64,000 nucleotides of DNA from Macrostomum lignano. Taxonomy: Eukaryota. Positions 16,306 through 60,067 of this stretch are shown in pieces. Below the pieces are notes generated by a model. It was not told the DNA's origin. It was given only the letters and a program-made list of their open reading frames with translations, and made no database searches. The stretch spans positions 1-64,000 of the forward strand of contig NIVC01003430.1 of NCBI GenBank assembly GCA_002269645.1, given 5' to 3'. Position 1 is the stretch's first letter, and each line of letters starts with the position of its first letter. Made by a program: the position numbers and the translations under genes.

Positions 16306-16321
16306 TTTTTCTAAATGTTCT

Positions 16322-23917: not shown

Positions 23918-23992
23918 ATCATGGGAGGCTGTACCAGAGATGACACTGTGAGAAGCGACTTTATAGAGGAGGAAAGCGTTCGAAGCATCCTC
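23918..23992 (+). repeat. 75-bp direct copy of carboxylesterase coding sequence 21711-21785
   Basis: 74 of 75 identical (GACCTT vs GACTTT). Confidence 0.93.
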
Positions 23993-24424
23993 GCGGCAGT
24001 CTCAGACGATTGCAACAGATAGCCAGGTGTCAGTGCTGGCAACACGGATGGTCAGGTGTTAGTGCTGACGTCAGGATATAGCCAGACAGGTGCTGTAGTA
24101 ACACTAGCTGCGTCCTGCCGAACTCGTTCGTTTTTCCGTACTTGGAAATAAACAACAGACAGCAAACTTCGCAGCACAGGCGGATCAACGCGATTCACTG
24201 GCAGCAGGCTGGACTTCCTGAACATCTCGACTGCAAAAGGTTCAAAGCAGAAAACCTGATGGCACAGTCTCATCAGGAGATCTAGCGACACTTGCAGCAA
24301 TTGCGACTCGGTTCCGCCCCGAGCTCATGCTTTGGTACCCTGAGGCAGCATTTGAAAAGCAGGTGCAGCAGTGGGTGCTTGGTCAGGTCGGGTGTTCTCA
24401 CAAGATCTAAATCTGACATTTTAG

Positions 24425-24540
24425 ATTAAAGGCAGGGGCTGTGTGCAAACTACTGGCGCACTTAAAGTGACAATTGTCACACCCCAAAATGACTGCATTT
24501 CGCCGCTTGCACATCAGAGCGTCGCACTAGACCACTAGGC
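24425..24540 (-). mobile_element. Internally deleted copy of SINE family 2
   Basis: Reverse complement aligns by eye to the head (19033-19100) and tail (19305-19352) of the 19022 element. Confidence 0.45.
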
Positions 24541-25613
24541 TTACGCTCCCCTTGGACTGTCGGGGTTTTTTGAATCGAAACTTCGTTGAAGGAGTGCCCA
24601 GAAAGGAAATCGGTCTGAATAAAATATCGTTGTTGTAGTCGAGAAGATTTATGCGGGCTTGTGACTGGCCAGCAGGGCAGCATGATGCGCGTGGTGCCTC
24701 CTGCGTAATAAAATTGCATGCAGATCTATACGAGCTAAAATGCAGTGGGGATCCATGTGAAATTTTCAACCGCTTAATTGTCCTTCACTATTCTTTTTAT
24801 TGCACCAGACCGACTGGAAACTGCGAGCAAGAAGAACAAACCATTTAAAATTATTAGGCATGGTTTACTCCAGCAGCTTATAGCGCGATCCAAGCATTCA
24901 GGCCAGACCAAAATACCCAGAGACATGCATGCACACATTAAAGCAATATAATTTCAGTGGACGCTCGACTATTAAAACCGGGATTAAAATGTTTTTATTA
25001 GTTTGCTGTCCAGTCCTAAATCGAATTCTTCACATCATGGATCTTCGTTCTGAATAAATACAATTAAGTCACGCACATATGGCTAGAAAACACATTCTAG
25101 CCAATTTAAGTGCTCCTTCCAATTCCTTCGCAATGCCCCGGCGATGGCAGCATTCTACAAAAATTGCAAACAAAATAAGAAGTCTTAACTATATTTTTGG
25201 ATTAAATTTAATTTTCCAGCAGGAATACATAAATTACCATATAGAAATAGCATATATAGCATTTGCGAAGCAGATCCGTTATCCAAAACGAAAAAAATTC
25301 TGCAGGCGTTCAATTTTGTTTGAGTTCATTCAGTTCAGAAAACTGTTTGTTTAAAATTTAAAAAGTTTGACGAAAATGATTAGAAATAAATCAGTGTCTC
25401 ATGCACATTTACATTTACATTAAACTGGCCAATTCATATCCATCTGTAACTATGTTTTCCATTATATTTTATTTTCTACAACCATCTTGCTTTTTCTGTT
25501 ACCCTTTGGTTTAATACATTTAGGCAAAACTTCATATAATCATATGGATCAGTGTGCATTAGAGTTTGATTTCTTGTTCAAAATCTAGAAGGATTCTTTG
25601 CAATTGTATCATT

Positions 25614-25873
25614 GGGCCTTTTCATATTGCTTGCTCTGTTTCCAGAACCAGAACCAATTTGTAAAGTATAACTTTTTGTCTCTATAACTAGAGGGAGATA
25701 CGTGCTATAAAGTTTTTATTATTGAATGACAATCGCCAAGAAGAAAGTGAAAAATCGTGCAAAGTGAGGCTGTTAAGGCAGTCAAATATTAACAGAGTTT
25801 AATAGTTATACTGCTGTTTTTCTTGGAATTCCGAACCGATTCTGGTTCTGGAATTGGTAATATGAAAAGACCC
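25614..25873 (+). mobile_element. MITE copy 1 (260 bp, TIRs, 3-bp TSD ATT)
   Basis: Ends GGGCCTTTTCATATT ... AATATGAAAAGACCC, flanked by ATT on both sides; inverted homolog at 63677-63945. Confidence 0.8.
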
Positions 25874-26829
25874 ATTGTATGCAAGGAAGACCTGTACACT
25901 TGCTTTTGAAAGTCTAAACTTGTGCAGAGATAGCAGCAAAGATATAACATGCACCATCTATATATTCATAATCATAAGCTACATATATCCTGAGAAAAGC
26001 TGCATAGTCCTTCTAGAATCTAGGTACTATATGCATATATATGCTTAGACTAGGCCTAGCCTAGGCCTAGGGGCTCAGCCCAGGATGGAATTCTTGCACG
26101 AAAATTGCAACGCATTTTTGCGTTCGGGAAAAAAATTGCGAAAAATTGCGCAACGCAAAAAAAATTGCGCACCTGTACGGGCTGCAAAAAATGCGACAAA
26201 AATTGCAAATTATTTTGCGACTGTTTGCACAGTTTAAATTTATAAATAATTACTGACTTTACTGTATGAAATCTAGAATTACTACAAAAACGTAACATTT
26301 ATAGTTCGTTATTTACGAACTGTTCAAATTTAAAATTCTCTACTTAAAAAACAAAGATAATCAGTTTAATTTTTATTGTAACGAGTCGTCAAAAAATGCA
26401 AGTATAACACTATTGCAAAACATTTTTTTGACAATTGGTAATGCTAGAAATTGCACCACTAAATTTTGTTTAAGATTGTAAAATTGCGTTTGGTTCAATA
26501 TGGAATTGCGCACCTGTAGCAAGAACGGAGGCAGGACACAAAATTGGACTTTGAGCCTTTACCGCCCAATCACAAGCTTGCACAGCTGCCCGCTTACTAG
26601 GCACACTCTAAAGCATAGCCAGTAACAGTTCGAGCTATGATTCAGCATTTATTGAACTCACCATCGAGCTAAGGCGATGAAATTCAGCTGATATAAAGTT
26701 ACGAATATAAAGTATTGAACGAAACGAAAATATACGAGTATTATTACATTGCGATGCGATTACTTTGCTTTACTTAACACCCGCCTCGAGTTGGCACCAA
26801 TTTAAATTACGAAATTAAGGTGTACTGCA

Positions 26830-26840
26830 CTACCCCCCTC
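26830..26840 (-). promoter_or_regulatory. Polypurine tract (GAGGGGGGTAG)
   Basis: Abuts the 3' LTR on the minus strand. Confidence 0.85.
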
Positions 26841-27683
26841 GCGAAAAAAAACAATGTCCCCATTGCGCTGAAAATTGACAGTTCGAACAAAATCTACTTT
26901 ATGAAAATATTTCTTTGACACAATACAAGTTGCGTTCAATGCACGCTCACAAGACGGACACTAAAGGATCGAATCGCGTATGAGCAAAAGTTAAAAGCCA
27001 ACTTCAAAAATAGCGGCAAAATTCTTCAACCACAGCAATTTAGGACTTCACCAATGCAGTTTGAACCTAACGCGGAACGAAAATGCTCGAGTCTAATTTG
27101 TAGGCTTGCGCCTTAGCAGTGTCATTCTATATCGGCGTACATTCAACTCTCTAACCATGCACGCGCCAACCCCCCATTGACTAATATTTAAATACACGCA
27201 TTGGCATTTACTCGTATTTGGAACTTTGCTATCGGTATCGATCCAAGCAAACGCACACGGCTTGTCAGACTTCCTACATAATTCAATAGAATATCGGATG
27301 ATGATCAACGCACATACCCTAACGGATGCTAAAAATCGAACAATTATGTCAATGCGGAATAAAAATGCAATATTCACTTCAACGCGAAAATTTACCAATT
27401 TTTTTGAATTTAGAAAATATTGTTGAAATCGAAAATAAATATTTTGATAGCAAAATGCGATTTAATATATAAGGGAATATATAAAGCACCGGCCTGGAAC
27501 TCGGAAACCACAACTGATTAAAACTCGAAAAGACAGCGGATTTGAATCTTAAAAACGAATTAAACGCAAAAAATACTCAGCCAAGTGACACGCAAAGGCA
27601 GCTCTGCTGGAACAGCGCACAAATGCACAACTCAAGCACAAACTGCGCAGGTCGCAGAAATCGGCAAAAAAAGATTGTCAGAC

Positions 27684-30600
27684 TCACACTAGGACCCAGC
27701 CATCGTCAAGAACTTCGCTGCTGCAGTCGCTGGTCGCCTCACTCCGCGCCGGGTCGGGAGCGCGGGGCTGGTGCGCACGTTTCAGCTTGTTTGGCGACGG
27801 CGGAACAAAAACCCATACGAGGTCGCCGACCCGGAATCTGCACCGCTTGGCCTTCCGGTCGTAGTACCGCCGCTGGCGTCGTTGTGCCGTCGCCATCGAT
27901 CGCCGCACGGAGTCGTAGGCGCGAAGCAGCTGGTCGCGGTTGTTGGCGGCGAACTGGCCGACTGTCATTGGCGGCTCCGGTGGCCGGTAGACGACGTCAA
28001 CTGGAAGCGTCATTTCCCGGCCAGTCAGCAGGCAGTGAGGAGTAAACCCGGTTGTAGCATTGACGCTGCTGCGGTAGGCCAGGAGACAATGCGGCAGCAC
28101 TTCTTCCCAGTCCTCCGGCTGGACTGACTGCAGGTGGCAGCGGAGCATCTGGTGCAGAGTGCGGTGGAACCTTTCTACTAGGCCGTCGCACTGCGGATGG
28201 TAGCCGGATGTCCGCGTCTTCTGAATCTCCAGCAGCCGGCACAGGCTCCTGATGACCTTTCCGTCCACGGCCTTGCCACGGTCGGAGTGCAGAATGTGCG
28301 GGGCTCCGAAACGCGTCACCCAGTTGTCGAACAGTGCCTTGGCGATGGTGGCCGCTTTCTCGTCGGGGAGTGGCACCAGCTCGACCCACTTGGTGAAGTA
28401 GTCGACAATGGTGAGCAGCCGATCGTTTCCCGCTGTGACAGTCCAACTTTGACCACGTCGATGCCCACGCGCTGCATAGGAAATCCACTGGCCATAGTCT
28501 GCAGTGGAGCTCGGCGCTGACTCGGTGTCTTAGCGCGCTGGCACACTTGGCAGGACTTGACCGCTAGGCGAACGCTCTCCGCCATTTTCGGCCAGTAGCA
28601 ACGCTGCTTGAGGGCTGCCAAGGTCTTGTCCTCGCCCAGATGCCCAAGCTCATGGACCTCCTCGATGAACTCCTCCTGTCTGCAGCGCGGAATCACAGGC
28701 ACAGGCTTGGACTTCACCAGCTTGTTCAGGGCGCCGTCGACGAAACACAGGTCGCCGATCTTCTGTGCCAGAATTAGGCTCTCAGGCGACAGTCGGTCAC
28801 GTCTGCTGGCGCTGAACCTTGTCTTGCCGTTGGACAGCAGGCGAAACACCGGGCCGATGTCTGGATCACGGAGCTGCAGTTCACGCAGTGACTGAGACGC
28901 ATCTGACAGCGCCTCGCCTTCCTGAATGGCCTCGTCGCTGATTTCGTCTTCGCTGGAGTCCTCGCTCTCGCTTGGCCGCGGTTGAAGCTGCTGCTTCCGC
29001 CTTGAGGTGCCCTGACGTTCCGGCTCGGCGTTGGTCTGGGCAGCCGCAGAGGTAGCCGGCGCTGATGTCGCTGCGTTGGTTTGCACGGAGTTGACTCTGA
29101 CTGTGTCGACCCGGCCAGCAGGCTCCGCGATTGGCACTGGCGCCTCGACCGTCGGCTCCGTCTGGCAGGCGGCTGTTGAAGTCTCGGCTGGCGCCACCGC
29201 TGTCGTCCCTGGCCGACAGACTCGACACTGGCTGGTGCACTTTTGCTCTCGCCGAGAGAGGGCGTCTGCGTTGCCGTGTTGGCGGCCTCGGCGAAAGACG
29301 ACCTTGAAGTTGAACTCATCGAGCAGCTGCAGCCATCTGGCCAGCTGGCCTTCGGGCTCTTTGAATGCCAGCAGATAGGTGAGCGCCTGGTGATCCACTC
29401 GTACGGTGAAGGCGCGCGGCAGCAGGTAGCTCCGGAACTTCTTAACAAACTCGACAACAGCCAGGAGCTCGCGCCGCGTCACGCAGTAGTTGCGCTCAGC
29501 TCTTGACAGGGCGCGGCTGGCGTAGGCGATAACCCGCTCTTCGCTCGCCTGCACTTGCGACAGCACCGCGCCGATTGCGCAGTCACTTGCGTCGGTGTCG
29601 AGGATGAATTCGGAGCCCGACTCGCTCATGTCCGGGAACGCCAGGATCGGAGCTGACAGCAGCGCTTGCTTCAGCTGGTTGAAGGCCGCCTCAGCTTCTG
29701 GCGTCCACTCGAAGGGCGTAGGCAGTGTAAGGCGGCGCAGAGGCTCGGCGATATTGGCGTATTCGCGCACAAATCTTCGGTAGTACGAGGTCATGCCGAG
29801 GAAGCTCTTGACGTCCTTCGAGCTCCGGGGCACCGGCCAGTCTCGCACAGCCGCGGTTTTGCCCTCATCGACGGTGATTCCGGTCTTGCTGACGCGGTGG
29901 CCCAGGACTAACATGCTGGTATTTGCAAATCGGCACTTTGACGGCTTGAGGCGCAGGTTAAACTCGCGCAGTCGCTCCAGAACTGAACGCAGCCGATCGT
30001 TGTGCTGGCCGATGGTCTGGCCCATCACGATGACGTCGTCAATGAACACCAGACAGGCCTGCCACGTCAGTCCCCGGAGCACCAGCTGCATGAGCCGCTG
30101 AAAGGTGGCTGGTGCATTCCGTAGTCCGAACGGCATCACGTTGAATTCAAACAGGCCTTCATGGCATACAAATGCCGTCTTCTCCTTGTCTCAGTCATTC
30201 ATCTCGACTTGCCAGTAGCCACTTTCGAGATCCAGCGCTGAGAAGTAGCTGTTTCCTTCGAGGGCATCCAGAGTGTCATCGATGCGGGGCATCGGGAAGG
30301 CATCGGGCTTGGTCACCGCGTTCAGCAGGCGGTAGTCCAAGCAAAATCTGGCCGACCCGTCCTTCTTGCGAACCAGAACTATCGGAGATGCCCAAGGTGA
30401 TGACGATGGTCGGACGACTCCCTTTGCCAGCATCTCGTTGACCAGCTCCTTCTGCTGTGCGATCGCTGTGGGAGCCAGGCGCCGCAGTCCTTGGCGAATT
30501 GGCCTGGCGTTGCCTGTGTCGATCTCGTGCTTTAACAATTGGGTGCGGCCTGGGTTGCTGGGGCTCGCGAAGACGTCGCTGAACTCCAGCAGAAGGCGTT

Positions 30601-31477
30601 CGACTTGCTGCCGCTCCTCGGTTGGGATGTCATCGGCGATTTGCACCTCGTCCTGCCAGGTCGTTGCAGTAGTCGGATCTGCCTCGCTGGCATCACCAGA
30701 TCCTCCGGCTTGCAGGTGCGCCAGGGCTCGGCCAGACAGCGGGTTGAAGTTGCCGACGATGTCGCCCTCCTTGATCTCGACTGTCTCATCTCTGGTGTTG
30801 ATTACAGCAAGCCCCATTCCGTGGTCAACCAGCTTGGACACGCTGCGGCCGATCATCACTTTGGCCGCCTTGCTGCCGCAGACAACGCCTGGTGCCTCCG
30901 AGTTCGTCCACGCTGCCGCGCTCGCTGGCCGCACCGGAATGATCCAGCCATCGCCTGGCTGCAGTCGAACCGTGGCTGCCGCTGCCAGCTTGCAAGTCTG
31001 GGCCGCCTGCCTGGATGTCCGCATTGGCAAGGTGACGCCGAGGCCGTTAAACTCGAGAATGCCTAATCTCAGGTGGATCGAAATGTCAAATTTGTTTAGG
31101 AAGTCGCAGCCCAGAATTACCGGTGCGCTGAGGCAGGTCACTGCCAGGAATCTGTGTCGAAAATGAAGCGGACCAAGAAAAAAACTTATCTCAATTTCGC
31201 CCAGCACTGTTGCTTGATTGCCGCCCACGCCATAGATGGTTGTTGAGCTGGGTCTCAGCTGCCGCCTGAGCCTGGCCGAGTGCACGATGTCGCCGTTGAT
31301 GCAGGAGATCTCGGCACCGGTGTCGATCATGCACGGCCGGCGTTTTCTGAGCATGCGCGAGGTGATGAAGCGCACTTGGTCGGGCTGGCAGCTGGGGCGT
31401 AGGGGCTGGGCCGAACTGCTTAGTGCTGAGAGGGCCGGTGCTGGCCCATTGGACCAGCCCCCCCAGCGTTTGGGCAC
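27684..31477 (-). pseudogene. pol: Gypsy pol (protease, RT, RNase H, integrase) with one in-frame stop and one frameshift
   Basis: IDTGAEIS protease; LDLESGYWQ then TGA at 30191-30193, then DKEKTAF...MPFGL...FIDD; LDTDASDCAIGAVL RNase H; HELGH...CQVC zinc finger; a 1-nt loss near 28430 separates RVGID from HSDRG...GLVERFHRTL. Confidence 0.92.
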
Positions 31478-32733
31478 CTCCGGCGGATGTGGCCAGGCTG
31501 ATGGCAGCCGTAGCAGATGGGCACCGCCCTAGGCTGCTGCTGTTGATGTGCAGCGGCGTCAGCTGATCTCCATGGTGGCGCTGGGGCTGTCTGCGCTCGA
31601 TGAGCCGCTGGCTGGTGATGTTGTGTCGTCTGTGGCCCATGCTGCGGTCGGGTTCCTGTTGGTGTTGACTGAACCGGTGCCGCTGGAGCTGACGCCTCGG
31701 CGCTGTGGTGCTGCGGCTGGGAATTCATTATCTGCCGGGTCTCGCGCACTTGCTGGGCATAATGCAGGGCCTGATCCGGTGTAGTAAGAGGCAGCTGCAT
31801 ATTAAGCAGCCGCTCCGTCACGTAGTTGTCGTTCAGCCCTTGAATGAACCGCTCAAGCACAGTCTGCTGGCGACAGTCTTGAGCACCGAGCTCTGGGTAG
31901 GCCTTGAACGCGAGTCGCTGGAGGGCAGTCAGAAAATCCTCGAACCTCTCGTCCCTGCCCCGGCACCGGCTGTGAAGCTCGCGCCGAAGTAGTGCAGTGC
32001 TGGTGGCACCGCCATGACGAGCGCGAAGGAGCTGCAGGAGATCTTCATAGCGGGCACCTGGCAGGAACTGCAGTGAAGTCCCAACGGGCTGTCCATGCTG
32101 CGCGCACAGTTGGTAGAGCCAGACCTCGTAGGTAGCGAATGCTGGTCCCAGGTAACTGCTGAGCGTGTTGATCTTGCTGTAGTCACTCAGTCCTTGGTGC
32201 CGGCTTAAATACGAAGACACTCGACCCAGAAAGTCATCGAACGGTTCGGATCCGTTGAAGGGCGCCGGCTTCGGCACCGACGGAAGCTGGATTGCTTGTT
32301 GATATACCGGTGCGCACAGGTTGCGGTCGCCAGCGCCAGGGTGAGATCCGCCTTGGAGCAACGGAGCCCATGGTTCGGCCATACGGTGCACAGAGGGTCT
32401 TGGTGGATGTGTCACTGCAGCTGCCGCAGCTGCCGCGGAAGGCCTGGTGTCCAGCAGGAATGAGTCTCCCGTCGCCATGTAGTTCGTTGACGGTTGGCCG
32501 GGCCCGGGGGGCACTGGCACTTGAGACTGACAGCAGCGTGCTTCATCGACAGAGATTTGCACAGGATCGAGGTCACGAAGCTCTTGATAGCGCCGCCAGT
32601 TCGCCTCCCGTTCGGATTCTGGCTCACTGGTTGACGAAGAGGTGTAAGCCGCAGCCGCAGCGGTCGGACGTAAAATATCGCGATTTCTCAGTCTTAGCCG
32701 TTGAGGCTCTTCTGCCTCACGTTCTGACCACAT
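31420..32733 (-). CDS. gag: Gypsy Gag, ~437 aa, with a CCHC zinc knuckle
   Basis: Open frame from ATG 32733; CYGCHQPGHIRRRC; capsid-like LERFIQGL. Confidence 0.88.
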   Translation of the reverse strand: MWSEREAEEPQRLRLRNRDILRPTAAAAAYTSSSTSEPESEREANWRRYQELRDLDPVQISVDEARCCQSQVPVPPGPGQPSTNYMATGDSFLLDTRPSAAAAAAAVTHPPRPSVHRMAEPWAPLLQGGSHPGAGDRNLCAPVYQQAIQLPSVPKPAPFNGSEPFDDFLGRVSSYLSRHQGLSDYSKINTLSSYLGPAFATYEVWLYQLCAQHGQPVGTSLQFLPGARYEDLLQLLRARHGGATSTALLRRELHSRCRGRDERFEDFLTALQRLAFKAYPELGAQDCRQQTVLERFIQGLNDNYVTERLLNMQLPLTTPDQALHYAQQVRETRQIMNSQPQHHSAEASAPAAPVQSTPTGTRPQHGPQTTQHHQPAAHRAQTAPAPPWRSADAAAHQQQQPRAVPICYGCHQPGHIRRRCPNAGGAGPMGQHRPSQH

Positions 32734-32784
32734 GATGATCGATGACAGGTGCAACCTTCGGTCTTTTATGCTATGAAGAAATTC

Positions 32785-32802
32785 GTCCTGGCGTGGTCGC
32801 CA
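32785..32802 (-). promoter_or_regulatory. Primer binding site, probably tRNA-Arg
   Basis: TGGCGACCACGCCAGGAC lies 2 nt from the 5' LTR. Its complement ends CGTGGTCGCCA, like tRNA-Arg(TCG) 3' ends as I recall them. Confidence 0.7.
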
Positions 32803-33374
32803 AATGTAGCAAGAACGGAGGCAGGACACAAAATTGGACTTTGAGCCTTTACCGCCCAATCACAAGCTTGCACAGCTGCCCGCTTACTAGGCACACTCTA
32901 AAGCATAGCCAGTAACAGTTCGAGCTATGATTCAGCATTTATTGAACTCACCATCGAGCTAAGGCGATGAAATTCAGCTGATATAAAGTTACGAATATAA
33001 AGTATTGAACGAAACGAAAATATACGAGTATTATTACATTGCGATGCGATTACTTTGCTTTACTTAACACCCGCCTCGAGTTGGCACCAATTTAAATTAA
33101 GAAATTAAGGTGTACTACACACCGAAAAAAAGTCGCAATTTTCCCCGTTTTATATGCCAGATGTAAGAATTCCATGCTGGGGCTCAGCCCTTGGGCTTTC
33201 AGTCAATCTGGCAATACGACAATCTAGCAACAGACAATCTAGTGACAAAGTGATAACAGATGGAGATGATCTGGTGATAGATTTTGAATTTTAGAATTTA
33301 TAGTTTTAAATAGAGATAAAATATAATTTTATATATAAAGAATTTATTTTTAAAATGGTTCTTTAAATAATGTC

Positions 33375-34060
33375 GGCAGTGACTATTTGTCCAATATTGG
33401 ATGAATAATGTAACTATTATTCGTCCAGTACCGGATAAATAAAAGTGAAGTTATTCATCCAGCACAGTACAAATGTGGATATATAATAAAAACTTATTAA
33501 ATACAGGAATACTCAAAAAGTAGTATATAGTTCACTTTTAGGGTAGAAGCAAAAAATATTTGTTATGATTAGATAGTGCTCTTTCTCAGAAATTCTATAA
33601 CTATGGGCAAAAATACTTGGGCATAAGTACTTGGACATAGGCAAAATACCAAAAGTTTTGTATAATTTTTACCTTTATTATATTTTGTTCTATATATATC
33701 AGTATGTTTTGGTTTCACAGTAAACAGTAGTCATAGCACAGTCAAAATTAATAACGACATTTGCTGCTGTATAACACAAATGCCAAAGTAAGGATTTAGA
33801 GTTATTACAATAACACTTGGAGTTGTTGAAAAAAAAAAGTAGAGTCATTACTATATATTCAAACTCAGTACTAAGTGATCATCAGGAAGACACTCTAACA
33901 TCACACTAGTATACCTTGCTAGAAAAGATGCACAGCCATAGAGTAGCATATAAATTCACGTAGCTCAGCCAGTACTAGACAAATAACTTCACTATTATTT
34001 ATTTGGTACTGGACAAATAATAGTTATATTATTCATCCAATACTAGATGAATATTCACTG
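33375..34060. repeat. Imperfect ~90-bp inverted repeat pair (33375-33465 and 33968-34060); possible old foldback/MITE
   Basis: GCAGTGACTATTTGTCCAATATTGGATGAATAATG... matches the reverse complement of the distal arm; no TSD found. Confidence 0.55.
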
Positions 34061-34439
34061 CTTGGTATGTTATGGCTAAACCTCTGACTAAGTTTACTTT
34101 GACTAAGACTAAGTAATACCAAACATTTTTATATTATAGAATATAGGCCCTAATGTATTTGATTATAAAACTAGGCTTAGTATGTAGCCCTATAGATAAA
34201 TACATCAATTTAATGTAGTTTCCTGTTTTTAAAAGCAAAATCATCATTATATTAAAAAACAAGTTATGAAATCTATTTCATCTTTTTATTTTTATTAGAA
34301 AAAAAGAAAAAAAATTGTACCAAAAAGTATTTGTAATATATTTTAATGCTTATGCCTATGGTTATAATTTTTTAAGCTTTTTTTTCTTGTGCATTTTTTT
34401 AAACATAATGTTTGAATGTATTTTCTACTTTTGTTCATA

Positions 34440-35776
34440 GGCCTGGCCTATTGTTAATTATTGTTAATGGCATACATAGCATATAGTTGGCAAACATGGC
34501 ATAAAGAAAGTAGGCATGCAAACAAAAAACTTCCAGGGTAGTTGGTTTGCTAATACCAAAATAGGGCAGCCTCAAAATTTTGAATTTCCATTGGCATTAA
34601 GTTCACACAAATAATTCCAGAAATTGCACAGACAAATCCCAATGCCACAAAATGTTTTTCTATTTTATTCCAGCTACTAGGTCCTCAATTCTGGGGGGAG
34701 GGTAGTTATCATAGGCAAGCAGTCTTTGTTAGGCATAGTCATTTGAATTAGGGCCTTAGATACCAAAATCAATGTACATCAAAATTCTCAGTTGATTACT
34801 ATAAGTAGAGTAGCACTGCCACTATAATAATTTTGTATTATAGAATGTTGAAGTCTTAAAGCTTTCTTTGAAAAGAGAACTATGGGTTATTTTATGCCCT
34901 ACAGGCAAATGACTCAAGATAGTCTATGGCTTCAATTAATTAATTAGTAAAATAGGTTATTAGAGTTTATTAAGAGCAAATTATATATAAAACTGAATTT
35001 AACAAAGGTAATTTATTATATAATAAATGATACTACTAAAAGATAGAGTCTGGCAGTACTGCATACATACTAGTAGAAGTTAAATCAAAGGTAAACTGTT
35101 AGGCTATCAAGCATAAACAAAAATCAAGGACTATAAAGTCAAAAAAAGTATTAGAGAGCCAAGCAAATAGATGGAAGAAAAGGGAAAGGTAGAAGGAAGA
35201 AGAGAGAGCATAATTAAGCAATACCAAAGAGCAATGTATAAATAAAAGTTAGGGAGCAAGAGGTAGACAATAGGGAATAGGTGCTGAGGACGAGGCATAG
35301 ATAACAAAGGCCAATGCAAGGAGCAAAGACAACACCACAGGAAAACAACAGAAACCGAATTGGGAATGCACAAAACTAGGGAAAAGAGCAGGGAGGCTAG
35401 GCCTAGGAACCAGGAACGATGATGATAGGGAGCACCATAGGATGGATAGGTCAGGCTTCACCTGGGACAATAGTGGAAAAATAGGACCAATGACAAATAT
35501 ATATTAGTCTAAATTTCAAAGTAAGGATAAAAATATTTGTGGTAGCTCATACTATCACAAACATGGGGATACTTTAAAAATTGATGCAATGTCTGACCTC
35601 CCAGTCTCAATGGTGTTGGCCTCTGTTTGCTAGCGCTCAGCTGCCTTAGTTGGCCAATTGGGAGCCATGCGCTGGGCCATCGGGCACAGTGGCTGCATTG
35701 TTGCTAGGCTCTTGGCCATTTGGTCACAGTGAGCATACTTGGACAGTTGCTGGTCTGGGCTGAGCTAGTCGGCCAT
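34440..35776 (-). pseudogene. Hypermutated pseudogene of a multi-pass membrane protein
   Basis: ATG 35776 directly after an acceptor-like TTGTAAG. Exon 35776-35598 (phase 2) joins 35461 onward via a GT-AG intron of 136 bp in phase. Several hydrophobic helices follow (to 35131). The same frame continues to ~34440 with many stops; that AT-rich distal part is less certain. Confidence 0.6.
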
Positions 35777-35829
35777 CTTACAAGGTAAATCTAGTCATAT
35801 TCATAATATAGACATCCAGGACACTTCTT

Positions 35830-36250
35830 TATTGCTGCATCCCAGAATACACATAGCCAAGGTGTCCAACCCTCGCTTAATAGACTGGCGTCCCAGAAGG
35901 CAATGGCAAGGAATAAAGCCAAGGCGGGCCAAGGGTGGCCTCCGCTGGTACAAGCAGATCTTGGCCTAGGTCAGTTGCTCCTTTAAGAGGTCGCAGGTAT
36001 GTTCCGGTGCCATCCACTAGCAGAGCAAGCACTAAGGAGCGTTGATGCATGCTCTTCCAAGCCAAGCCAAGTGGCTTGATAAAACCCCTCTTCAAGGGCA
36101 TTCTTTAGTTAGATATAGGCCAGGATATGCCAGTAGTGGTTGCTGTGTAAGCATATAGTGTGTTGGCCTCGCCAAGGCAGAGCTATATTGCTAGGGTAGG
36201 TGAGGCCTTGGGGCTAGTTGTAGTAGAACTCACGCTTGCTCAGTGGCACA
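35830..36250 (-). pseudogene. Second decayed coding segment of unknown protein
   Basis: KREFYYN*PQGLTYPSNIALPWRGQHTICLHSNHYWHILAYI*LKNALEEGFYQATWLGLEE; GC-richer than surroundings, and stops fit CAR-to-TAR changes. Confidence 0.5.
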
Positions 36251-37080
36251 ACCAAGGGGGGGGGGGCGGTCGCAAGATATGGGTGTCTAGGGTTTAAGCT
36301 GCATACCAGATTGATTGAATGAAAGGCCCCAATATTCTCACATCACATCAATGGGGGTCACATCTAGGAGGAGCTTTGCAAACATTTAGAATTAGACAAA
36401 TGACTGTAAGAGAGCAAATCAAGGCTCCTTACTAACATTAATATTAGATTTATTGGATAGTATGAAACTAACCAAAATAATAGGCATGGGTTTCCATAAG
36501 GAGTTACACAAACAAAAGGGAGGAAAAGAGCACTAGAAAATTTTTTCTAGGCTTGGGCTCGATTGCAACATCGATTTGGGGAGCCATAATTCATCTCAGA
36601 TGCCCTCACTAGGGACATGGCCTCAAACAAAGAGGACCTGACCCAAGTGCAGCAAGACACTAAAATTAAATAGATCAGTTAGATGAGAAATTTACCTTCA
36701 GCTCATTAACTGAAGCTGAGAAGGTTTACAAATAATTCAAATTTGTGTAATTCATGCAGCAAACAGTGAGAAAGGAAAATGATACTTTCAGCACTTTGGA
36801 TGTGTGTAAAGAAAGTTTACAGTAAGGGGTTTGGCAAAACAGAAGGGATAATTCACATTGAGAGTTATTATAACGCATGCAGATAAATATGAATGCATAT
36901 GTGCAGGCTTTTGCCAGAAAGCCTAAGGCTAAATATGAGCACAGAGGTGCAGGCTTAGAGTAATGCATCACATAAGCATGAGCATGCAGAAATAGATAGA
37001 TTATTGCTTTTATCTGAAAAGGTTAAGGAGAGTTAAAATGAAAAATTGCTTTTGTTTAGAAAGCATAAACAAAAGTTGGA

Positions 37081-37162
37081 AACTGCTTTTACCCTCAAGC
37101 ATAAGGTCATATTGAAAAGGAAACTGCTTTTACCCTCAAGCATAAGGTCACATTGAAAAGAA
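37081..37162. repeat. ~41-bp tandem duplication
   Basis: AACTGCTTTTACCCTCAAGCATAAGGTCAYATTGAAAAG twice. Confidence 0.85.
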
Positions 37163-37736
37163 TTAAAAATAACTTGTAGCATAGTAGTGGGTGCATCTTG
37201 GTGTTTTAGTGTTGTGTTGCTATGTTATCTTGCATTTTGGAGCACATCATTTGTATTTTGTTTACTTATAAGCTTACATGGTTAAGACGAAAAGACAGCA
37301 GAACTTGAAAATCTATGCTGTGCATATTCTTAAAATGTTAACTATGAGTCTAACTAACTCATAAAAATTTTTGCACACATTTGTACTGTGAGCCTTTTGT
37401 ACAATGTGCTTCTTGATGTCCTCTCCTATCCTCCATAGCATTTCTTCTCTTTAGGGATTTCTTATGGAATGAAATTTAACTTAAAAAAATAAAAATTTAA
37501 AAAGCATATAAAAAATTCCAAAGTGCACTAAACATTTAAGCCTCAGAGTAGCAATGCACCAACCAGACTTCTGTCTGCAAAAAACACATCTTGGCTACAA
37601 TAGAGTATATAATTAAGAATCTTTATAATTGAACACAAAGCCAAACTAAAAAACAGCCATGCAAAGTTGTAATCCAAGCCTGGCTTGAATTTCTCTTTCA
37701 TGCTAGTAGCTTTTACTAACTTCAATTTATCGCATC

Positions 37737-39470
37737 ATGTCTGCCGATGTCGCCAGCTCGGAGGTGGCCGCGCCCGACCTCGACGCCGAGGCTTCTTCAA
37801 CAGCAGCAGCTGCGGTGGCGGATTCGACAGCGGGTGATCAGCAGGCACCGACTCCTCCAGCAGCCAACGGCGCTGTTGATGTTGACGAAGGCGCATCGTC
37901 GGGCCCTGCCGATCATCCAGAGCCCGATAGCCGAGCTGCCGCCGCTGGCGAAGCCGGAGCCAGCGTTGAAGCTGAAGGCCTCGGCGGTGGCGGCGACGAC
38001 GCTGAAAAGCCGGAGGACGCGGCCGACGAGGTGTCGGAGGCGCCAGCGCCGGCGCCGACTTCCTCAGGCGTGGCCACGGGCCGCAACAACGAGGAGGAGG
38101 CGGACGAAGAGGAAGAGGAGGAGTCGGACGAGGACATCAACGTGATCATCAACAAGGCGGACACGGCCAACCCCAACACGGCCTTCAACAGGCAGCAGCA
38201 GCAGTCGGCCGCCGGCAAATCAAAGCGCACCGGAGCTGCTGCTGGCGGCGGCGGCGGCGGCGGCCAGCGAACGGCGGTTGATCTGGACAATCCGGGCAAC
38301 ATCGGTGGCGCGCCCACCATCGATTACAACATGGCCAGCCTGCGCGAGGAGGAGAAGCCGTGGACCCGGCCTGGCGCTGACATTGCCGACTATTTCAACT
38401 ACGGCTTCAACGAGGAGTCCTGGGTGGCCTACTGCGAGAAGCAGCGCCTGCTGCGGGCCCAGAACGGCGGCCGGCTGCCCTCGGTGATGACCGACCCGCT
38501 GCAGCCGTTCCGTCCGACACGCCGGGGCGGCGGTGGCGGTGTCGATTCGCATGGCCAGCAGTTGCAGCAGCAGCACGACAGGCATGAGCGGCAGCAGCAC
38601 GACCGGCACGAGCGGCAGTCGGAGCGGCAGCACCAGCCGCAGCGGTCCGCCATCACTGTCATCGGGGCCACGTCTGGCGATAATCGACGGCCCCGCCGCG
38701 ACTCTCAGGGCCAGGACAGCGGCAACGTTCCCCGCATGATTCCCACTCTGGGTGGCGGCGGCGGCGGCGGAGGTGGCGCTCCGTTTCTTCAGCACCACCC
38801 ACCGCCGATGCAGCCGCACCTGCAGGGCCCGATGCAGCTGCCGCCGGCCGCTGCGGCCGCCTTTGGTTTCATTCCGCAGTCCTCGACTGCCCAATTCGTG
38901 CCAATGACGGCCGCCCCGCCGCCGCCTCAGCCTGGGTTTATGCCGGGCCCGGGCGTGCTGGCCTATCCAGGCATGCCGCCGCCGCAGGTGCCCTGGACTG
39001 CCGCGCCGCCGCCGCAGATGCCGCCGCCACCCCCGGTGTCCGCGGCCAGCTACGCTGGAGAGGCTCTGCATCAGCAGCAGCCAATGCAGCAGCAGCAGCA
39101 GATGATGGAGCAGAAGCCCGACCCACCAGCGGGACCAGCTGGCCACCTGGTCAGCCTCACCGGCAATGCGGGACAGCCAAGCGTTTCTGCCGCCTCCACT
39201 GCTGCCGCAGCTTCAGCCGGCTTGAGCGACGCTGCCCCCGCCCCCGCCGCCGCTTCAGCTTCGAATTCGTCGCGCGAGCGTCGCCGCCGCCGCAGCAGGA
39301 GCCGCAGTCCGCCCGCCGAGTCGTCTTCGTCAAGCCGCAGCCGGAGCAGCCGCCAGCATCAGCAGCAGGAGGCCAGCAGCGGCGGCTCGCGCAGGCAGCA
39401 GCGCTCCCGTTCCCGTAGCGGCGAGCGGCGCCGTCGCGGCAGCCGCGAACGGGGGGAGCGCCGGAAGTGA
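37737..39470 (+). CDS. FIP1L1: Pre-mRNA 3'-end processing factor FIP1, single exon, 577 aa
   Basis: Fip1 motif [35 protein letters not shown]; acidic N-terminus, Pro-rich middle, RS/RE tail. Confidence 0.95.
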
Positions 39471-40151: not shown

Positions 40152-40244
40152 TGCGGCTAGCCGATGGCGCATGGCGCTACCAACAACTTAGCATCTCTTC
40201 CTCTAATTGCTGTGCAGCCACCCATCCGCCTTTGCCCCTTCCTA

Positions 40245-41060
40245 CCCCTTGTGCACCTACCCCTCCTCCGCCTCTGCCCCTAACCCTTTTACACCCACCC
40301 CTCCTCCGCCTCTGCCCCTAACCCTTTTACACCCACCCCTCCTCCGCCTCTGCCCCTAACCCTTTTACACCCACCCCTCCTCCGCCTCTGCCCCTAACCC
40401 TTTTACACCCACCCCTCCTCCGCCTCTGCCCCTAACCCTTGTACACCCACCCCTCCTCCGCCTCTGCCCCTAACCCTTTTACACCCACCCCTCCTCCGCC
40501 TCTGCCCCTAACCCTTGTACACCCACCCCTCCTCCGCCTCTGCCCCTAACCCTTGTACACCCACCCCTCCTCCGCCTCTGCCCCTAACCCTTGTACACCC
40601 ACCCCTCCTCCGCCTCTGCCCCTAACCCTTGTACACCCACCGCTCCTCCGCCTCTGCCCCTAACCCTTGTACACCCACCCCTCCTCCGCCTCTGCCCCTA
40701 ACCCTTGTACACCCACCCCTCCTCCGCCTCTGCCCCTAACCCTTGTACACCCACCCCTCCTCCGCCTCTGCCCCTAACCCTTGTACACCCACCCCTCCTC
40801 CGCCTCTGCCCCTAACCCTTGTACACCCACCCCTCCTCCGCCTCTGCCCCTAACCCTTGTACACCCACCCCTCCTCCGCCTCTGCCCCTAACCCTTGTAC
40901 ACATACCCCTCCTCCGCCTCTGCCCCTAACCCTTGTACACCCACCCCTCCTCCGCCTCTGCCCCTAACCCTTGTACATCCACCCCTCCTCCGCCTCGGCC
41001 CCTACCCCCTTGTACACCCACTCCTCCTCCGCTTCTGCCCCTAACCCTTGTGCTCCCACC
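40245..41060. repeat. 38-bp C-rich minisatellite with one CCCTAACCC per unit
   Basis: Period 38 (40267, 40305); about 21 copies. Confidence 0.96.
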
Positions 41061-43765
41061 CCTCCTCCTCTGTCCTACCCTTTGTGCGCCAACAACAACT
41101 TAACCGCTGCTCTCTTCATGTGTTCTACGAGACTTTTTGCCACCCTAATCAATTTAAACTTTCCTCATCATATTTTTCCGACTAAAGTATTATTGTTCTG
41201 TAAGAGGTTAAGTATAAAAAAGTTCTACGTCGCCCCAGTGCTAAGTGGAAAGGGACCTAGTCAGATCAGTCAGCTTGTGTCAGCTAGTCAGATTATTTTG
41301 TGCTTAAAACTTTTCTGATTACGAATCTCTTAGCCGTACATGTGAATCTCGAATTGAGAGTTTTTCTGTCTATCCGGCTTCCTATTTCTCATGCTTTTTT
41401 TGCCCCAACTCCGCCGTCTAGTCAATGAAGCACATTACTGTTACTGCTCCTGCCTTATTTATTGTGAATCATAATAAATAGCTAATGCAACTATAATGAA
41501 GGGACAAGTGTACTTCGATTCCGCCATATTAATGCAGCTTCAAGTTACACATGTTTGTCTCTGAGTGATGCCTTCTCCATGTTTTAATGGATGAAACTAG
41601 TTAAAAAACCTCTGGGAATGAAATAATGATAATTTATATTCGGCTTTAAAATGAAACAGATATCAGAGATCGAATTCGGTTGCAGCAAACAGAAGTGAAG
41701 CAAACTATAGGAGGCTTTCCTGGCTGGCAGGTGACATTGGGAGGGATAATTATATGTGGATTCAGCTGTGTACAATTCAACTCTATGGCCAGGCCGCTGC
41801 AGAGCCAGTTGGGTGCGTGCAGCCGTCAGTTAAAGGATGCTGAGCGCGGATGTTTGGCCGCCCATCTGAATGCTATACGCGTGCATAAATAATACAGCTA
41901 GGTCTGCCTTCAGTGCATTCCCATCATGGCGTGCTAGTTCTTGCCTGAGTGCTCCCAGCTTGCTGAATTATTCATGAGGAACGCGCGCCCTCCCTCCTGA
42001 TGGATCCTCTTCTCTGAGCGCACTAGCGCGGGCTTGACAGGCCCGCTTGGAGTTGCATCGCTTTTTGTTCTGTTTCTTTTTTGCCCACAGCGGAAACGGC
42101 TGCTTGCTGGATGTCTTTGAAAGAAAATGAGGGAGAAACGTATATGCAGAGATGGATTTGTGTGAGCTGGCCCTGCGGCAAGTGCACCCACTCTGCTGCA
42201 CTTCAATAGGCCGTTAGAGTAAGCAAGAGACAGTCACTTAGCGAGGCTCTGGTCCTGCACAGACGCCACCCACGCCTAGTCGGCACCTCGTGGCGTGATT
42301 TTGAAATCGTGTACGACTAAGGCAAAGCTTTGGATTTTGGGTTTGCGAGCGGGACAGTCCTTGATTCTCAAACTCAAAATGCATTTTAGCCTGCAGTGTC
42401 AGTGCACACAGCCTTTCCATGCGGTGAGCAGCTGTTACACTCTCCACCGAGCTTCAGCATTGCTGTTTGTACTCTGCAGTAGTTGCGCGGATATTTAATA
42501 ATATTGGCTCAGTTGCTCAACTAGACAATGTGGCAGTTAATTCAGTGCTTGGCAGAAGTGCACTTGGCCTAAGCTATTATATGCTTTAACAATATGCCTT
42601 AGTAGATTGACTGAAGGCGCACAGCTGATCAATTCTGCTCCCGAATCGAGACGGATTAAACGCGGAGGCGCTCTCTAGCATAGGCTCTTTAAAAAAATTA
42701 TTGCTGTTCAACTGCGCCGAAATAGAATGCGGCGCACTCCGCTTGCCAAGTTCCAGTGGCTCTCCTTGCTGAGCTTTTTGCTCTCCAAGGTAGCCGGATC
42801 AATACAGCAGGAGCTGCATTGAGGGGGGGGGGGCTGCCCAAGCACCGGCGAAACTCGCGCGGAATTTCTTCCCACCTCAAATTTTTTTGCTTAGAAACCG
42901 GATCGAGCTTGTTTTTTGCCCAGTGCGAATTTTCCCAGCTCTGCAGATCCCAGCCAATCAGCGGGCGGGCACCCCGTCTCCTGGCAGTCCCGCAATAGGA
43001 AACGGGGGGTTCATAACTGGCACTAAAAGTTCCCATCGGCTCCGCTGCCACAAACTGGCCTGCACTGAGACGGGGACTGCGGACTTGACCAACAGGTGAG
43101 TCTGGGGGCTTGGATGGCAGCCGCTTCTGGGTGTGTACTTTTAAGAGAGTTATAGTCACAGTGTTCATTAAGCTGCATGCAGCACTCTAGGGCCATTCTC
43201 GATTCCGGACACAGAAAAACATGAAAGGCTACCGATTTCCGAAATCAGCGAGACATTGTGACTGACCAATTTAGATTGTTAGTCCTGAACTTGTGCAAGA
43301 AAAAAGTCATGAATTCTGCTCAGGATCGTTGCAAATGCACTTGAATTGCTGGCGTGCAGCCTGCGGAAGCCTTGTACAGTCGTGCAGTCCTGACCGGACT
43401 GGGCATTTCTGCCATCTCATTTTTCCTCCCTATGTGGCTCAGAGCATCAATTAGTTTTATGAATTTCGGCGACTCCGTTTCTGACTTCCAGTTGGTGGGG
43501 GGGGGGCTGTTGGTAATTGGAAAACCGATCGGCTGTCCCGCCTGTCCGCCTGCTCAGCTCCCTGCTGGCGCTGGGGTGACCCAGCAGCCCTCGTGTCTCT
43601 CCGAGCTTGTCGGGACTTTACTGGCTGGCTGGCAGACACTGGCTTCCGTCTCACCCAACTCAGTTGGATGGATGATGCGACTTCGCTCTGTTTTCAAAGG
43701 CCGTTGGTTAACGCAATCGCTTGGGTTCCATCCACACCCACCCAGATTATCCTTGCTGCAGTCCA

Positions 43766-46700
43766 GACCGATTCTCTATCTGAATCAGTTCAGCTCAGAG
43801 TGCTCATAACTGACTGATTCTCTATCTGAATCAGTTCAGCTCAGAGTGCTCATATAAACTGACTGATTCTCTATCTGAATCAGTTCAGCTCAGAGTGCTC
43901 ATAACTGACTGATTCTCTATCTGAATCAGTTCAGCTCAGAGTGCTCATAACTGACTGATTCTCTATCTGAATCAGTTCAGCTCAGAGTGCTCATAACTGA
44001 CTGATTCTCTATTTGAATCAGTTCAGCTCAGAGTGCTCATAACTGACTGATTCTCTATCTGAATCAGTTCAGCTCAGAGTGCTCATAACTGACTGATTCT
44101 CTATCTGAATCAGTTCAGCTCAGAGTGCTCATAACTGACTGATTCTCTATCTGAATCAGTTCAGCTCAGAGTGCTCATAACTGACTGATTCTCTATCTGA
44201 ATCAGTTCAGCTCAGAGTGCTCATAACTGACCGGTTCTCTATCTGAATCAGTTCAGCTCAGAGTGCTCATAACTGACTGATTCTCTATCTGAATCAGTTC
44301 AGCTCAGAGTGCTCATAACTGACCGGTTCTCTATCTGAATCAGTTCAGCTCAGAGTGCTCATAACTGACTGATTCTCTATCTGAATCAGTTCAGCTCAGA
44401 GTGCTCATAACTGACTGATTCTCTATCTGAATCAGTTCAGCTCAGAGTGCTCATAACTGACCGGTTCTCTATCTGAATCAGTTCAGCTCAGAGTGCTCAT
44501 AACTGACCGGTTCTCTATCTGAATCAGTTCAGCTCAGAGTGCTCATAACTGACTGATTCTCTATCTGAATCAGTTCAGCTCAGAGTGCTCATAACTGACC
44601 GGTTCTCTATCTGAATCAGTTCAGCTCAGAGTGCTCATAACTGACCGGTTCTCTATCTGAATCAGTTCAGCTCAGAGTGCTCATAACTGACCGGTTCTCT
44701 ATCTGAATCAGTTCAGCTCAGAGTGCTCATAACTGACTGATTCTCTATCTGAATCAGTTCAGCTCAGAGTGCTCATAACTGACTGATTCTCTATCTGAAT
44801 CAGTTCAGCTCAGAGTGCTCATAACTGACCGGTTCTCTATCTGAATCAGTTCAGCTCAGAGTGCTCATAACTGACTGATTCTCTATCTGAATCAGTTCAG
44901 CTCAGAGTGCTCATAACTGACTGATTCTCTATCTGAATCAGTTCAGCTCAGAGTGCTCATAACTGACTGATTCTCTATCTGAATCAGTTCAGCTCAGAGT
45001 GCTCATAACTGACCGGTTCTCTATCTGAATCAGTTCAGCTCAGAGTGCTCATAACTGACCGGTTCTCTATCTGAATCAGTTCAGCTCAGAGTGCTCATAA
45101 CTGACCGGTTCTCTATCTGAATCAGTTCAGCTCAGAGTGCTCATAACTGACCGGTTCTCTATCTGAATCAGTTCAGCTCAGAGTGCTCATAACTGACCGG
45201 TTCTCTATCTGAATCAGTTCAGCTCAGAGTGCTCATAACTGACCGGTTCTCTATCTGAATCAGTTCAGCTCAGAGTGCTCATAACTGACTGATTCTCTAT
45301 CTGAATCAGTTCAGCTCAGAGTGCTCATAACTGACTGATTCTCTATCTGAATCAGTTCAGCTCAGAGTGCTCATAACTGACCGGTTCTCTATCTGAATCA
45401 GTTCAGCTCAGAGTGCTCATAACTGACTGATTCTCTATCTGAATCAGTTCAGCTCAGAGTGCTCATAACTGACCGGTTCTCTATCTGAATCAGTTCAGCT
45501 CAGAGTGCTCATAACTGACTGATTCTCTATCTGAATCAGTTCAGCTCAGAGTGCTCATAACTGACTGATTCTCTATCTGAATCAGTTCAGCTCAGAGTGC
45601 TCATAACTGACCGGTTCTCTATCTGAATCAGTTCAGCTCAGAGTGCTCATAACTGACCGGTTCTCTATCTGAATCAGTTCAGCTCAGAGTGCTCATAACT
45701 GACTGATTCTCTATCTGAATCAGTTCAGCTCAGAGTGCTCATAACTGACCGGTTCTCTATCTGAATCAGTTCAGCTCAGAGTGCTCATAACTGACTGATT
45801 CTCTATCTGAATCAGTTCAGCTCAGAGTGCTCATAACTGACCGGTTCTCTATCTGAATCAGTTCAGCTCAGAGTGCTCATAACTGACTGATTCTCTATCT
45901 GAATCAGTTCAGCTCAGAGTGCTCATAACTGACTGATTCTCTATCTGAATCAGTTCAGCTCAGAGTGCTCATAACTGACCGGTTCTCTATCTGAATCAGT
46001 TCAGCTCAGAGTGCTCATAACTGACCGGTTCTCTATCTGAATCAGTTCAGCTCAGAGTGCTCATAACTGACTGATTCTCTATCTGAATCAGTTCAGCTCA
46101 GAGTGCTCATAACTGACCGGTTCTCTATCTGAATCAGTTCAGCTCAGAGTGCTCATAACTGACTGATTCTCTATCTGAATCAGTTCAGCTCAGAGTGCTC
46201 ATAACTGACCGGTTCTCTATCTGAATCAGTTCAGCTCAGAGTGCTCATAACTGACCGGTTCTCTATCTGAATCAGTTCAGCTCAGAGTGCTCATAACTGA
46301 CTGATTCTCTATCTGAATCAGTTCAGCTCAGAGTGCTCATAACTGACCGGTTCTCTATCTGAATCAGTTCAGCTCAGAGTGCTCATAACTGACTGATTCT
46401 CTATCTGAATCAGTTCAGCTCAGAGTGCTCATAACTGACTGATTCTCTATCTGAATCAGTTCAGCTCAGAGTGCTCATAACTGACCGGTTCTCTATCTGA
46501 ATCAGTTCAGCTCAGAGTGCTCATAACTGACCGGTTCTCTATCTGAATCAGTTCAGCTCAGAGTGCTCATAACTGACTGATTCTCTATCTGAATCAGTTC
46601 AGCTCAGAGTGCTCATAACTGACTGATTCTCTATCTGAATCAGTTCAGCTCAGAGTGCTCATAACTGACTGATTCTCTATCTGAATCAGTTCAGCTCAGA

Positions 46701-47152: not shown

Positions 47153-47193
47153 ATCTGAACCGATGGCCCTAGCACGCACACGCAATGGGGGCG

Positions 47194-60056: not shown

Positions 60057-60067
60057 CGAGTATTATA

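Follow-up and report, generated by a model that had tools for sequence, protein, structure and literature searches.

Context-dependent hypermutation by transitions in a CpG-poor intergenic patch, seen in both copies of a chromosome segment duplicated in the flatworm Macrostomum lignano

A window of 64 kb from the genome of the free-living flatworm Macrostomum lignano (NIVC01003430.1:1-64000, assembly GCA_002269645.1; "the window" refers to this whole stretch), in which GC-rich (~60%) and AT-rich (~30-35%) blocks alternate, contains a CpG-poor patch of ~3.5 kb (33370-36884) that sits between the insertion site of a Ty3/gypsy retrotransposon and a Fip1-like gene, upstream of the latter. Comparison with a paralogous segment of the same genome demonstrated that both copies of this patch have independently gained many surplus transitions since the duplication, with no surplus of transversions. 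The unusual composition of the patch is real and, where testable, goes back to genuine hypermutation by transitions that depends on sequence context and affects both paralogs; the patch is intergenic and not a broken gene. Judged from sequence, local DNA methylation appears to be the most likely and most economical cause, and the patch would then be a case of methylation-type decay with an unusual non-CpG component, at Y-C-A sites, in a flatworm whose methylome is undescribed. The core of the patch (34440-36250) had been described in an initial annotation of this DNA as spliced pseudogenes destroyed by C-to-T changes at CpA and CpG, with a signature like that of fungal repeat-induced point mutation (RIP).

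The paralogous segment (NIVC01000004.1:11701-34277, hereafter L001) is collinear with window positions 17125-40944, and the two are 92-96% identical in and around genes. The duplicated stretch covers at least 23 kb and includes two genes, whereas the hypermutated portion is only ~2.7-3.5 kb long and intergenic. Within the patch the alignment is also collinear, with 91-96% identity in a purine/pyrimidine alphabet. The patch and its parts are as follows (no strand applies; o/e, observed/expected ratio; MITE, miniature inverted-repeat transposable element):

33370-36884: CpG-poor, transition-hypermutated intergenic patch, 26 CpG observed vs 116 expected
33376-34061: MITE-like unit, in the window copy only, with inverted terminal arms of 90 nt (33376-33465 and 33972-34061) and internal palindromes
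34178-34790: left aligned part, pairing with L001 17366-18043 at 87% identity, zero CpG
34791-35995: window-only segment (L001 18043 and 18047 are adjacent), CpG o/e 0.25, TAG/CTA o/e 1.39
35996-36884: right aligned part and hottest zone, pairing with L001 18047-18285 and 18619-19210
35996-36241: first section of the right part, pairing with L001 18047-18285 at 80% identity
36273-36884: second section of the right part, pairing with L001 18619-19210 at 88% identity
36885-37567: window-only segment by the Fip1 promoter region (L001 19210 and 19212 are adjacent)

Because the L001 junction opposite the missing 1.2-kb segment (34791-35995) has no target-site duplication and a 4-nt filler (ATGG), and because the composition of this segment is like that of its flanks, it was probably lost by deletion in L001 and not inserted in the window.

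Between the copies, the aligned patch parts (34178-34790 plus 35996-36884) differ by 122 transitions and 43 transversions. The right part contributes 94 transitions and 22 transversions, compared with 138:138 in control stretches of this pair of paralogs (window 17125-20500 and 23255-26069; Fisher p = 6e-9), and the left part 28 and 21. Among the differences between the patch and its sister locus, C/T-type changes, including those at C-A sites, are in 4-5-fold excess. Transversions stay at the background level (2.6% in 35996-36884 vs 2.3% in controls), and the surplus is therefore specific to transitions; in 35993-36241, identity rises from 80% in the full alphabet to 95.6% in the purine/pyrimidine alphabet. 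Per 100 bp, 7-18 transitions occur in 36000-36700 and 4-8 in 34500-34800, compared with a density of 1-3 in other places. In the duplicated genes and the other intergenic DNA the transition/transversion ratio is ~1, and the control non-coding DNA, including the AT-rich 24.5-26 kb, has no context bias. The Fip1-like gene is a duplicated neighbor without hypermutation and serves as a further control, its region being 97.9% identical to L001 with 35 transitions, 19 transversions and 242 conserved CpG sites over 2.6 kb. Both copies of the patch behave alike, with T/A at 45 sites in the window and at 49 in L001, so that a confinement of the damage to one copy did not hold up, and the strands are equally affected (p = 0.47). 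Such an equal effect on both copies and strands fits a property of the locus, not of one copy.

The most mutable sites between the copies are CpG, as expected of methylation-driven decay. Only one CG is conserved in 35996-36884, along with 11 CG↔TG/CA differences and 7 adjacent CA↔TG doubles, whereas 235 CpG sites are conserved and 26 variable in the controls. The doubles can have arisen only where an ancestral CG was lost separately in each of the two lineages, and it is for CpG sites only that the C-to-T direction is proven. Under a simple model, the 860 bp compared held ~27 ancestral CpGs with a per-lineage survival of 0.24, which means that ~76% of the CpGs were lost per lineage.

A second, weaker component affects cytosines outside CpG. 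Difference rates per cytosine, pooled over the aligned patch parts, were:

CpG: 0.91 in the patch, 0.037 in controls
CpA: 0.22 in the patch, 0.026 in controls
CpT: 0.13 in the patch, 0.044 in controls
CpC: 0.07 in the patch, 0.023 in controls

The surplus follows the order CpG >> CpA > CpT > CpC, CpA leading only among the non-CpG sites, and the highest CpA triplet is CAG (0.34). Differences of the type TA↔CA/TG were found at 26 of 120 sites (21.7%) in 35996-36884 but at 28 of 828 (3.4%) in controls. Similarly, 17 of the 21 context-classified transitions of the left part occur at Y-p-A (17/150, compared with 4/313 in the remaining contexts; p = 4e-6). Outside CpG, the hotspot is Y-C-A (31% vs 11%, p = 2e-5), a bias that is absent in controls, and CCA/TGG↔CTA/TAG is the top variable class (0.39). 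A 5' preference for T or C at the mutated cytosine is also present (45 of 207 sites with a pyrimidine at -1 differ, compared with 20 of 211 that have a purine there; odds ratio 2.65, p = 7e-4), and the controls are unbiased. Among the 35 TAG/CTA triplets of the window in 35996-36884, 15 are CAG, CTG, TGG or CCA in the paralog. Strand coordination of neighboring changes is weakly suggested by runs tests (p = 0.125 for the window copy and 0.047 for L001).

In 34440-36250 there are 16 CpG where 74.8 are expected (o/e 0.21), and in 34001-35000 none where 20.8 are expected, whereas other AT-rich blocks, e.g., at 14-17 kb, have CpG o/e values of 0.7-1.2. TAG/CTA triplets number 91 in 34440-36250 (o/e 1.44, compared with 0.63-0.85 in other AT-rich blocks and 0.68 in the whole window), and their o/e is 1.2-1.4 across sub-segments of the patch, while AT-rich blocks of normal CpG content have 0.6-1.0. 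CAG/CTG is relatively low (o/e 1.16 vs 1.4-1.7 elsewhere), and CpA/TpG is without depletion (1.17). Values of 1.5-1.8 for (CpA+TpG)/(ApC+GpT) indicate a TpG/CpA surplus alongside the loss of CpG, and such local depletion with a reciprocal surplus is the mark of methylation-driven CpG decay. The initial annotation had already pointed to the strong CpG depletion, to an excess of CTA where intact genes use CTG (105 CTG vs 12 CTA), and to a CpA change beyond CpG decay; the first two are real, and the third is borne out in the parts with a paralogous counterpart.

Segments specific to one copy are CpG-poor as well (window 33370-34177 and 36885-37567; L001 16273-17365 and 18286-18618). The L001 counterpart of the patch (16001-19210) is equally CpG-poor, with o/e values of 0.07-0.28, and the patch predates the duplication of this chromosome segment. 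The MITE-like unit has a CpG o/e of 0.27 and a TAG/CTA o/e of 1.39; its arms are 84% complementary and differ mostly by transitions, including CA↔TG doubles and CCAG↔CTAG. The window-only segment 36885-37567 has a CpG o/e of 0.05 but no TAG surplus (TAG/CTA 0.79); a 41-bp tandem duplication is located inside it (37078-37159). Searches for paralogs within the window (blastn, tblastx) returned only the long terminal repeat (LTR) pair of the gypsy element and the arms of the MITE-like unit, no further copy of the patch was found within the 86 kb covered by the window and L001, and a search for older relatives in the purine/pyrimidine alphabet gave only the syntenic paralog and low-complexity polypurine matches. 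An unrelated AT-rich patch without a counterpart in the window is present at L001 1501-2500 (CpG o/e 0-0.17, TAG/CTA 1.36), which suggests that such patches recur in the genome.

With moderate confidence, we attribute the decay to germline cytosine methylation of the patch by DNMT1/DNMT3 followed by deamination. The patch, probably silenced and transposon-littered DNA, would be a target of germline methylation through the retained DNMT1 and DNMT3; 5-methylcytosine (5mC) would then deaminate to thymine, turning CG into TG or CA until CpG was nearly gone, and a weaker non-CG methylation, or a poorer repair of T:G mismatches, would turn CA/TG into TA. Such a gain of TA would yield TAG and CTA triplets, which resemble stops at Gln, Trp or Leu positions in any frame. 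Like the CpG decay of mosaically methylated animals, the patch combines CpG o/e values of 0-0.27 with a reciprocal TpG/CpA surplus, nearly all of its CpG sites have mutated between the copies, and transitions alone are in excess, on both strands. It differs from such decay in its non-CpG part (CpA 8-fold and CpT/CpC ~3-fold over control, with the Y-C-A hotspot), in being intergenic and transposon-littered where gene bodies are the usual target in invertebrates, and in a speed of decay that is very high relative to neutral divergence. M. lignano was found to retain DNMT1 and DNMT3 (PMC11292947, PMC9246332), with low-level 5mC of unknown genomic pattern (PMC11292947, PMC9246332, PMC10658182), and a review from 2022 regarded methylation patterns as unknown in free-living flatworms (PMC9246332). 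A precedent for the CpA component comes from a macaque that had lost MBD4 repair, in whose germline C>T changes were raised at CpG and, significantly, also at CpA (PMC10760519); therefore, CpA deamination can mutate an animal germline. However, the macaque effect is genome-wide and results from a repair defect (PMC10760519), whereas here a patch of a few kb is affected and its neighbors mutate normally.

Several observations weigh against the methylation explanation. The implied decay, ~1.4 events per CpG per lineage compared with ~0.015 per ordinary C, is large for spontaneous deamination. A pyrimidine 5' of the mutated cytosine is the mark of APOBEC-type targets (TC/CC), which the preference observed here resembles, whereas non-CG methylation of the DNMT3 type is directed at CAG/CAC and differs from it. 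A CpG-poor block without a TAG surplus exists at 50001-52000 (TAG/CTA 0.84). Cluster members of the esterase led to only two genomic copies, the window itself (L002) and L001, and with no third copy of the locus the non-CpG differences have no assignable direction; when composition was compared with mutability to obtain this direction, rho was -0.06 with CpG removed. Finally, the 5mC of M. lignano has been reported as low-level (PMC11292947, PMC9246332, PMC10658182).

The coding interpretation rested on strings quoted from the sequence, all of which do exist, on the minus strand:

35762-35770, minus strand: GACTAGCTC
35627-35635, minus strand: CGCTAGCAA
36211-36219, minus strand: AACTAGCCC
35455-35463, minus strand: AGGTGAAGC
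35398-35406, minus strand: CTAGGCCTA

Four of the five fall in the unpaired segment 34791-35995, and the only quoted stop with a paralogous counterpart is that in AACTAGCCC (AAC TAG CCC), where L001 has GAC CAG CCC. The initial annotation saw no evident frameshift; however, the stops at 35770 and 35635 are in one frame and those at 36219, 35463 and 35406 in another, and two phase changes are therefore needed. The in-phase GT-AG intron was not identified either, the GT..AG candidate at ~35778-35814 being 37 nt long and failing to join the frames. When stop density was examined by frame, no frame fell below dinucleotide-preserving shuffles after six-frame correction (p = 0.04 over the entire region and 0.22 over 35560-36300). 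A six-frame Pfam search with stops masked gave nothing at E<=1, and a 2384-aa query, in which all stop-free segments of 35 aa or longer, in any frame of 34440-36900, were concatenated with three C/G-restored peptides, had no match at E<=10 among 5.8 billion proteins. Furthermore, no gene is annotated in the L001 interval paralogous to the patch. After restoration of C/G at the variable sites of the aligned parts most stops vanished, but all frames opened alike and none stood out. A spliced pseudogene is thus not supported by any domain, homolog, frame signal or gene call, and the intact homolog whose absence the initial annotation itself had named as refuting its proposal was not found. Any non-coding DNA that has decayed by transitions can offer apparent stops at positions suited to Gln.

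Two further observations concern open frames in this region. At ~35100-35480 the plus strand is strongly purine-rich (an A/G tract) and all three minus-strand frames are open for 50-108 codons; these open frames are a compositional effect that mimics open reading frames (ORFs). The best ORF that was not of low complexity (35880-36104, minus strand) was submitted to an exhaustive HMMER search, and two internally repetitive proteins were rejected as artefacts, since their scores were sums of 21-29-bit stretches; one of them consists of repeated GntR fragments, and no domain was recognized in its companion.

It is extremely unlikely that the patch is a spliced coding pseudogene killed by a RIP-like system sensing redundant gene copies. 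Some observations do fit: CAG or TGG of the paralog is matched by TAG in the window and CTG by CTA, intact genes favor CTG, and C/G restoration clears most stops. Nevertheless, this restoration favors no frame, none of the frames outperforms shuffled sequence, the quoted stops are divided between two frames, searches yielded no Pfam domain, no homolog and only spurious repeat matches, the paralogous interval has no annotated gene, and the neighboring genes that truly are redundant remain intact. Neutral decay of the ordinary kind, or a chance effect of AT-rich composition, would agree with a stop density near random and with a TpA o/e of ~1, which is common in non-coding DNA; this is nevertheless very improbable, as control non-coding DNA of the same pair, AT-rich 24.5-26 kb included, has a transition/transversion ratio of ~1 and no context bias, and chance is a very poor account of the differences (p = 6e-9, 4e-6 and 2e-5). 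Somewhat less improbable, though still doubtful, is that the patch is non-orthologous or converted sequence, i.e., an old transposon remnant of which one or both copies were partly overwritten by ectopic gene conversion from diverged, CpG-decayed relatives; the differences would then stem from divergence within that family and not from hypermutation in place. The abrupt jump of divergence at the patch and the copy-specific segments (window 33370-34177, 34791-35995 and 36885-37567; L001 16273-17365 and 18286-18618) could be explained in this way, but diverged donors should import transversions and indels, whereas transversions are at background, the alignment is collinear and highly similar in the purine/pyrimidine alphabet, and the 86 kb covered contain no other copy. 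An A-to-G hyperediting of double-stranded RNA by ADAR-type enzymes, copied back into DNA, also deserves mention. The change of TAG to TGG is the preferred ADAR triplet, the top class TAG↔TGG and the order of neighbors match ADAR preferences as well as they match C-to-T at CCA, and both strands are affected; however, the copies are syntenic chromosomal DNA and not independent retro-insertions, A-to-G changes cannot yield CA↔TG doubles or near-total loss of CpG, and TpA is enriched instead of depleted, all of which makes this route hardly credible.

The strongest competitor of methylation is enzymatic deamination as genome defense, in which an AID/APOBEC-like enzyme, or a DNMT-like enzyme of RIP type, would be recruited via a repeat or transposon family and convert C to U/T at Y-C-A and CpG in bursts; we consider it possible but rather unlikely. 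The Y-C-A hotspot with CCA/TGG↔CTA/TAG as the top class, the heavy load (~13% of G:C pairs per copy, with about three quarters of CpGs lost per lineage), the involvement of both copies as in RIP, the weak trend to strand-coordinated runs, and the richness of the patch in copy-specific indels and MITE-like units speak for it. On the other hand, CpG is by far preferred, pointing to 5mC, and at least 20 kb of surrounding duplicated DNA, genes included, are untouched, so that duplication itself is not the trigger. RIPCAL-type thresholds for RIP are TpA/ApT >= 0.89, (CpA+TpG)/(ApC+GpT) <= 1.03 and a composite index > 0. Computed for 34440-36250, these indices gave a divided answer, TpA/ApT (1.05) being on the RIP side, and (CpA+TpG)/(ApC+GpT) (1.54) and the composite index (-0.49) on the wrong side, with CpA/TpG not depleted. 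The patch does share with fungal RIP the C:G to T:A type of transition, the effect on both copies of a duplicate, the preference for CpA over CpT and CpC, the raised TpA/ApT, and the origin of TAG stops. It differs in that its host is an animal, that CpG is its main target (0.91 vs 0.22 for CpA), and that duplication is not the trigger: RIP hits all duplicated DNA longer than a few hundred bp, and here the flanking duplicated DNA is untouched. Fungal RIP also involves a DNMT-like enzyme of the RID/Dim-2 type acting premeiotically; for M. lignano, only DNMT1 and DNMT3 have been reported (PMC11292947). Since only the patch is hit within at least 23 kb of duplication, CpG dominates and the RIP indices are negative, fungal-type RIP is excluded, and the proposed action on redundant gene copies is not supported: the duplicated stretch includes two genes, and only intergenic DNA was hit. 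RIP has been described as fungal-specific (PMC2621366). AID/APOBEC editing of retroelement or viral DNA at TC/CC resembles the patch in 5' pyrimidine preference, in changes of the TGG-to-TAG type and in dense transitions, but the patch has no overall strand bias, is CpG-dominated, and is syntenic chromosomal DNA, not a reverse-transcribed copy. Moreover, a metazoan survey of AID/APOBEC enzymes reported no genuine flatworm deaminase, its sole flatworm candidate being identical to a snail-host sequence and read by the authors as a host/parasite cross-assignment (PMC5889660).

The footprint suggests that M. lignano methylates, or otherwise deaminates, discrete intergenic patches of a few kb, and that this has erased about three quarters of their CpGs per lineage since a recent duplication, with a Y-C-A component unusual for animals. 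A bolder and distinctly speculative proposal, on which we would place little weight, is a locus-targeted germline process mutating cytosines in M. lignano, based either on dense methylation at CG and non-CG (Y-C-A) sites with fast deamination or on recruitment of a DNA deaminase. Such a process would erode particular patches of intergenic or transposon-derived DNA at tens of times the rate of their neighbors and act as a functional counterpart of RIP in an animal, guided by the state of chromatin or small RNAs and not by duplication. An enzymatic origin of the non-CpG component would mean a mutational genome-defense mechanism in an animal; otherwise, the patch would illustrate decay under mosaic methylation, which is useful to have on record but no surprise. 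As the recent genome duplication of M. lignano provides thousands of paralog pairs, such patches could be mapped genome-wide by computation.

The landmarks of the window around the patch are:

20580-21842, plus strand: carboxylesterase ORF (Pfam)
26515-33120, minus strand: Ty3/gypsy LTR retrotransposon (Pfam and LTR pair)
28316-30139, minus strand: reverse transcriptase (RT)-RNaseH-integrase zinc-finger region of the gypsy element (Pfam)
30191-31477, minus strand: protease (PR)/RT region of the gypsy element (Pfam)
31420-32859, minus strand: gag of the gypsy element (Pfam)
37737-39470, plus strand: Fip1-like ORF, single exon (Pfam Fip1, E=2.7e-20)

The carboxylesterase product is 96-97% identical to Macrostomum lignano proteins, in agreement with the animal host that had been proposed from the letters alone. 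One of the two genomic copies of its gene is on NIVC01003430.1, where the positions of the gene and the gypsy ORFs agree with those in the window once an offset of 10579 is applied. The Fip1-like protein (577 aa) is encoded by one uninterrupted ORF of 60-69% GC with long low-complexity runs, and its L001 paralog has 573 aa; an exact look-up of the 577-aa product in the gene collection returned no record. The gypsy element is young, its 316-bp LTRs (26515-26830 and 32805-33120) being 99.4% identical, and its CpG content is normal. Its gag, PR/RT and RT-RNaseH-integrase zinc-finger regions are split over three ORFs, of which the 607-aa ORF has no integrase core domain. Since the element is not in L001, it was inserted after the duplication. 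The 12-bp string GGGGCTCAGCCC, at 26070-26081 and 33179-33190, bounds a 7.1-kb window-specific block composed of the element and extra sequence of ~430 bp and 60 bp. In L001, nearly the same site, beside a CTAGGCCTAG-rich motif, is occupied by another insertion of ~540 bp (15546-16100) with terminal inverted repeats at its ends (CATAGTCAGG...CCTGACTATG), and the site may be an insertion hotspot.

An Rfam search of the whole window gave no match. Tandem arrays are unusually abundant in the window (23 rows in Tandem Repeats Finder). They were considered as internal mutation clocks and dropped for this purpose, as their CpG content only mirrors the unit sequence. The largest array (43766-47156) is a 46-bp satellite with 73 copies, 96% matches and a unit without CpG, and further arrays include 5053-6427, 40241-41068, 59173-60057 and 1172-1702. 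A 38-bp array that starts directly after the Fip1 region is common to the window and L001.

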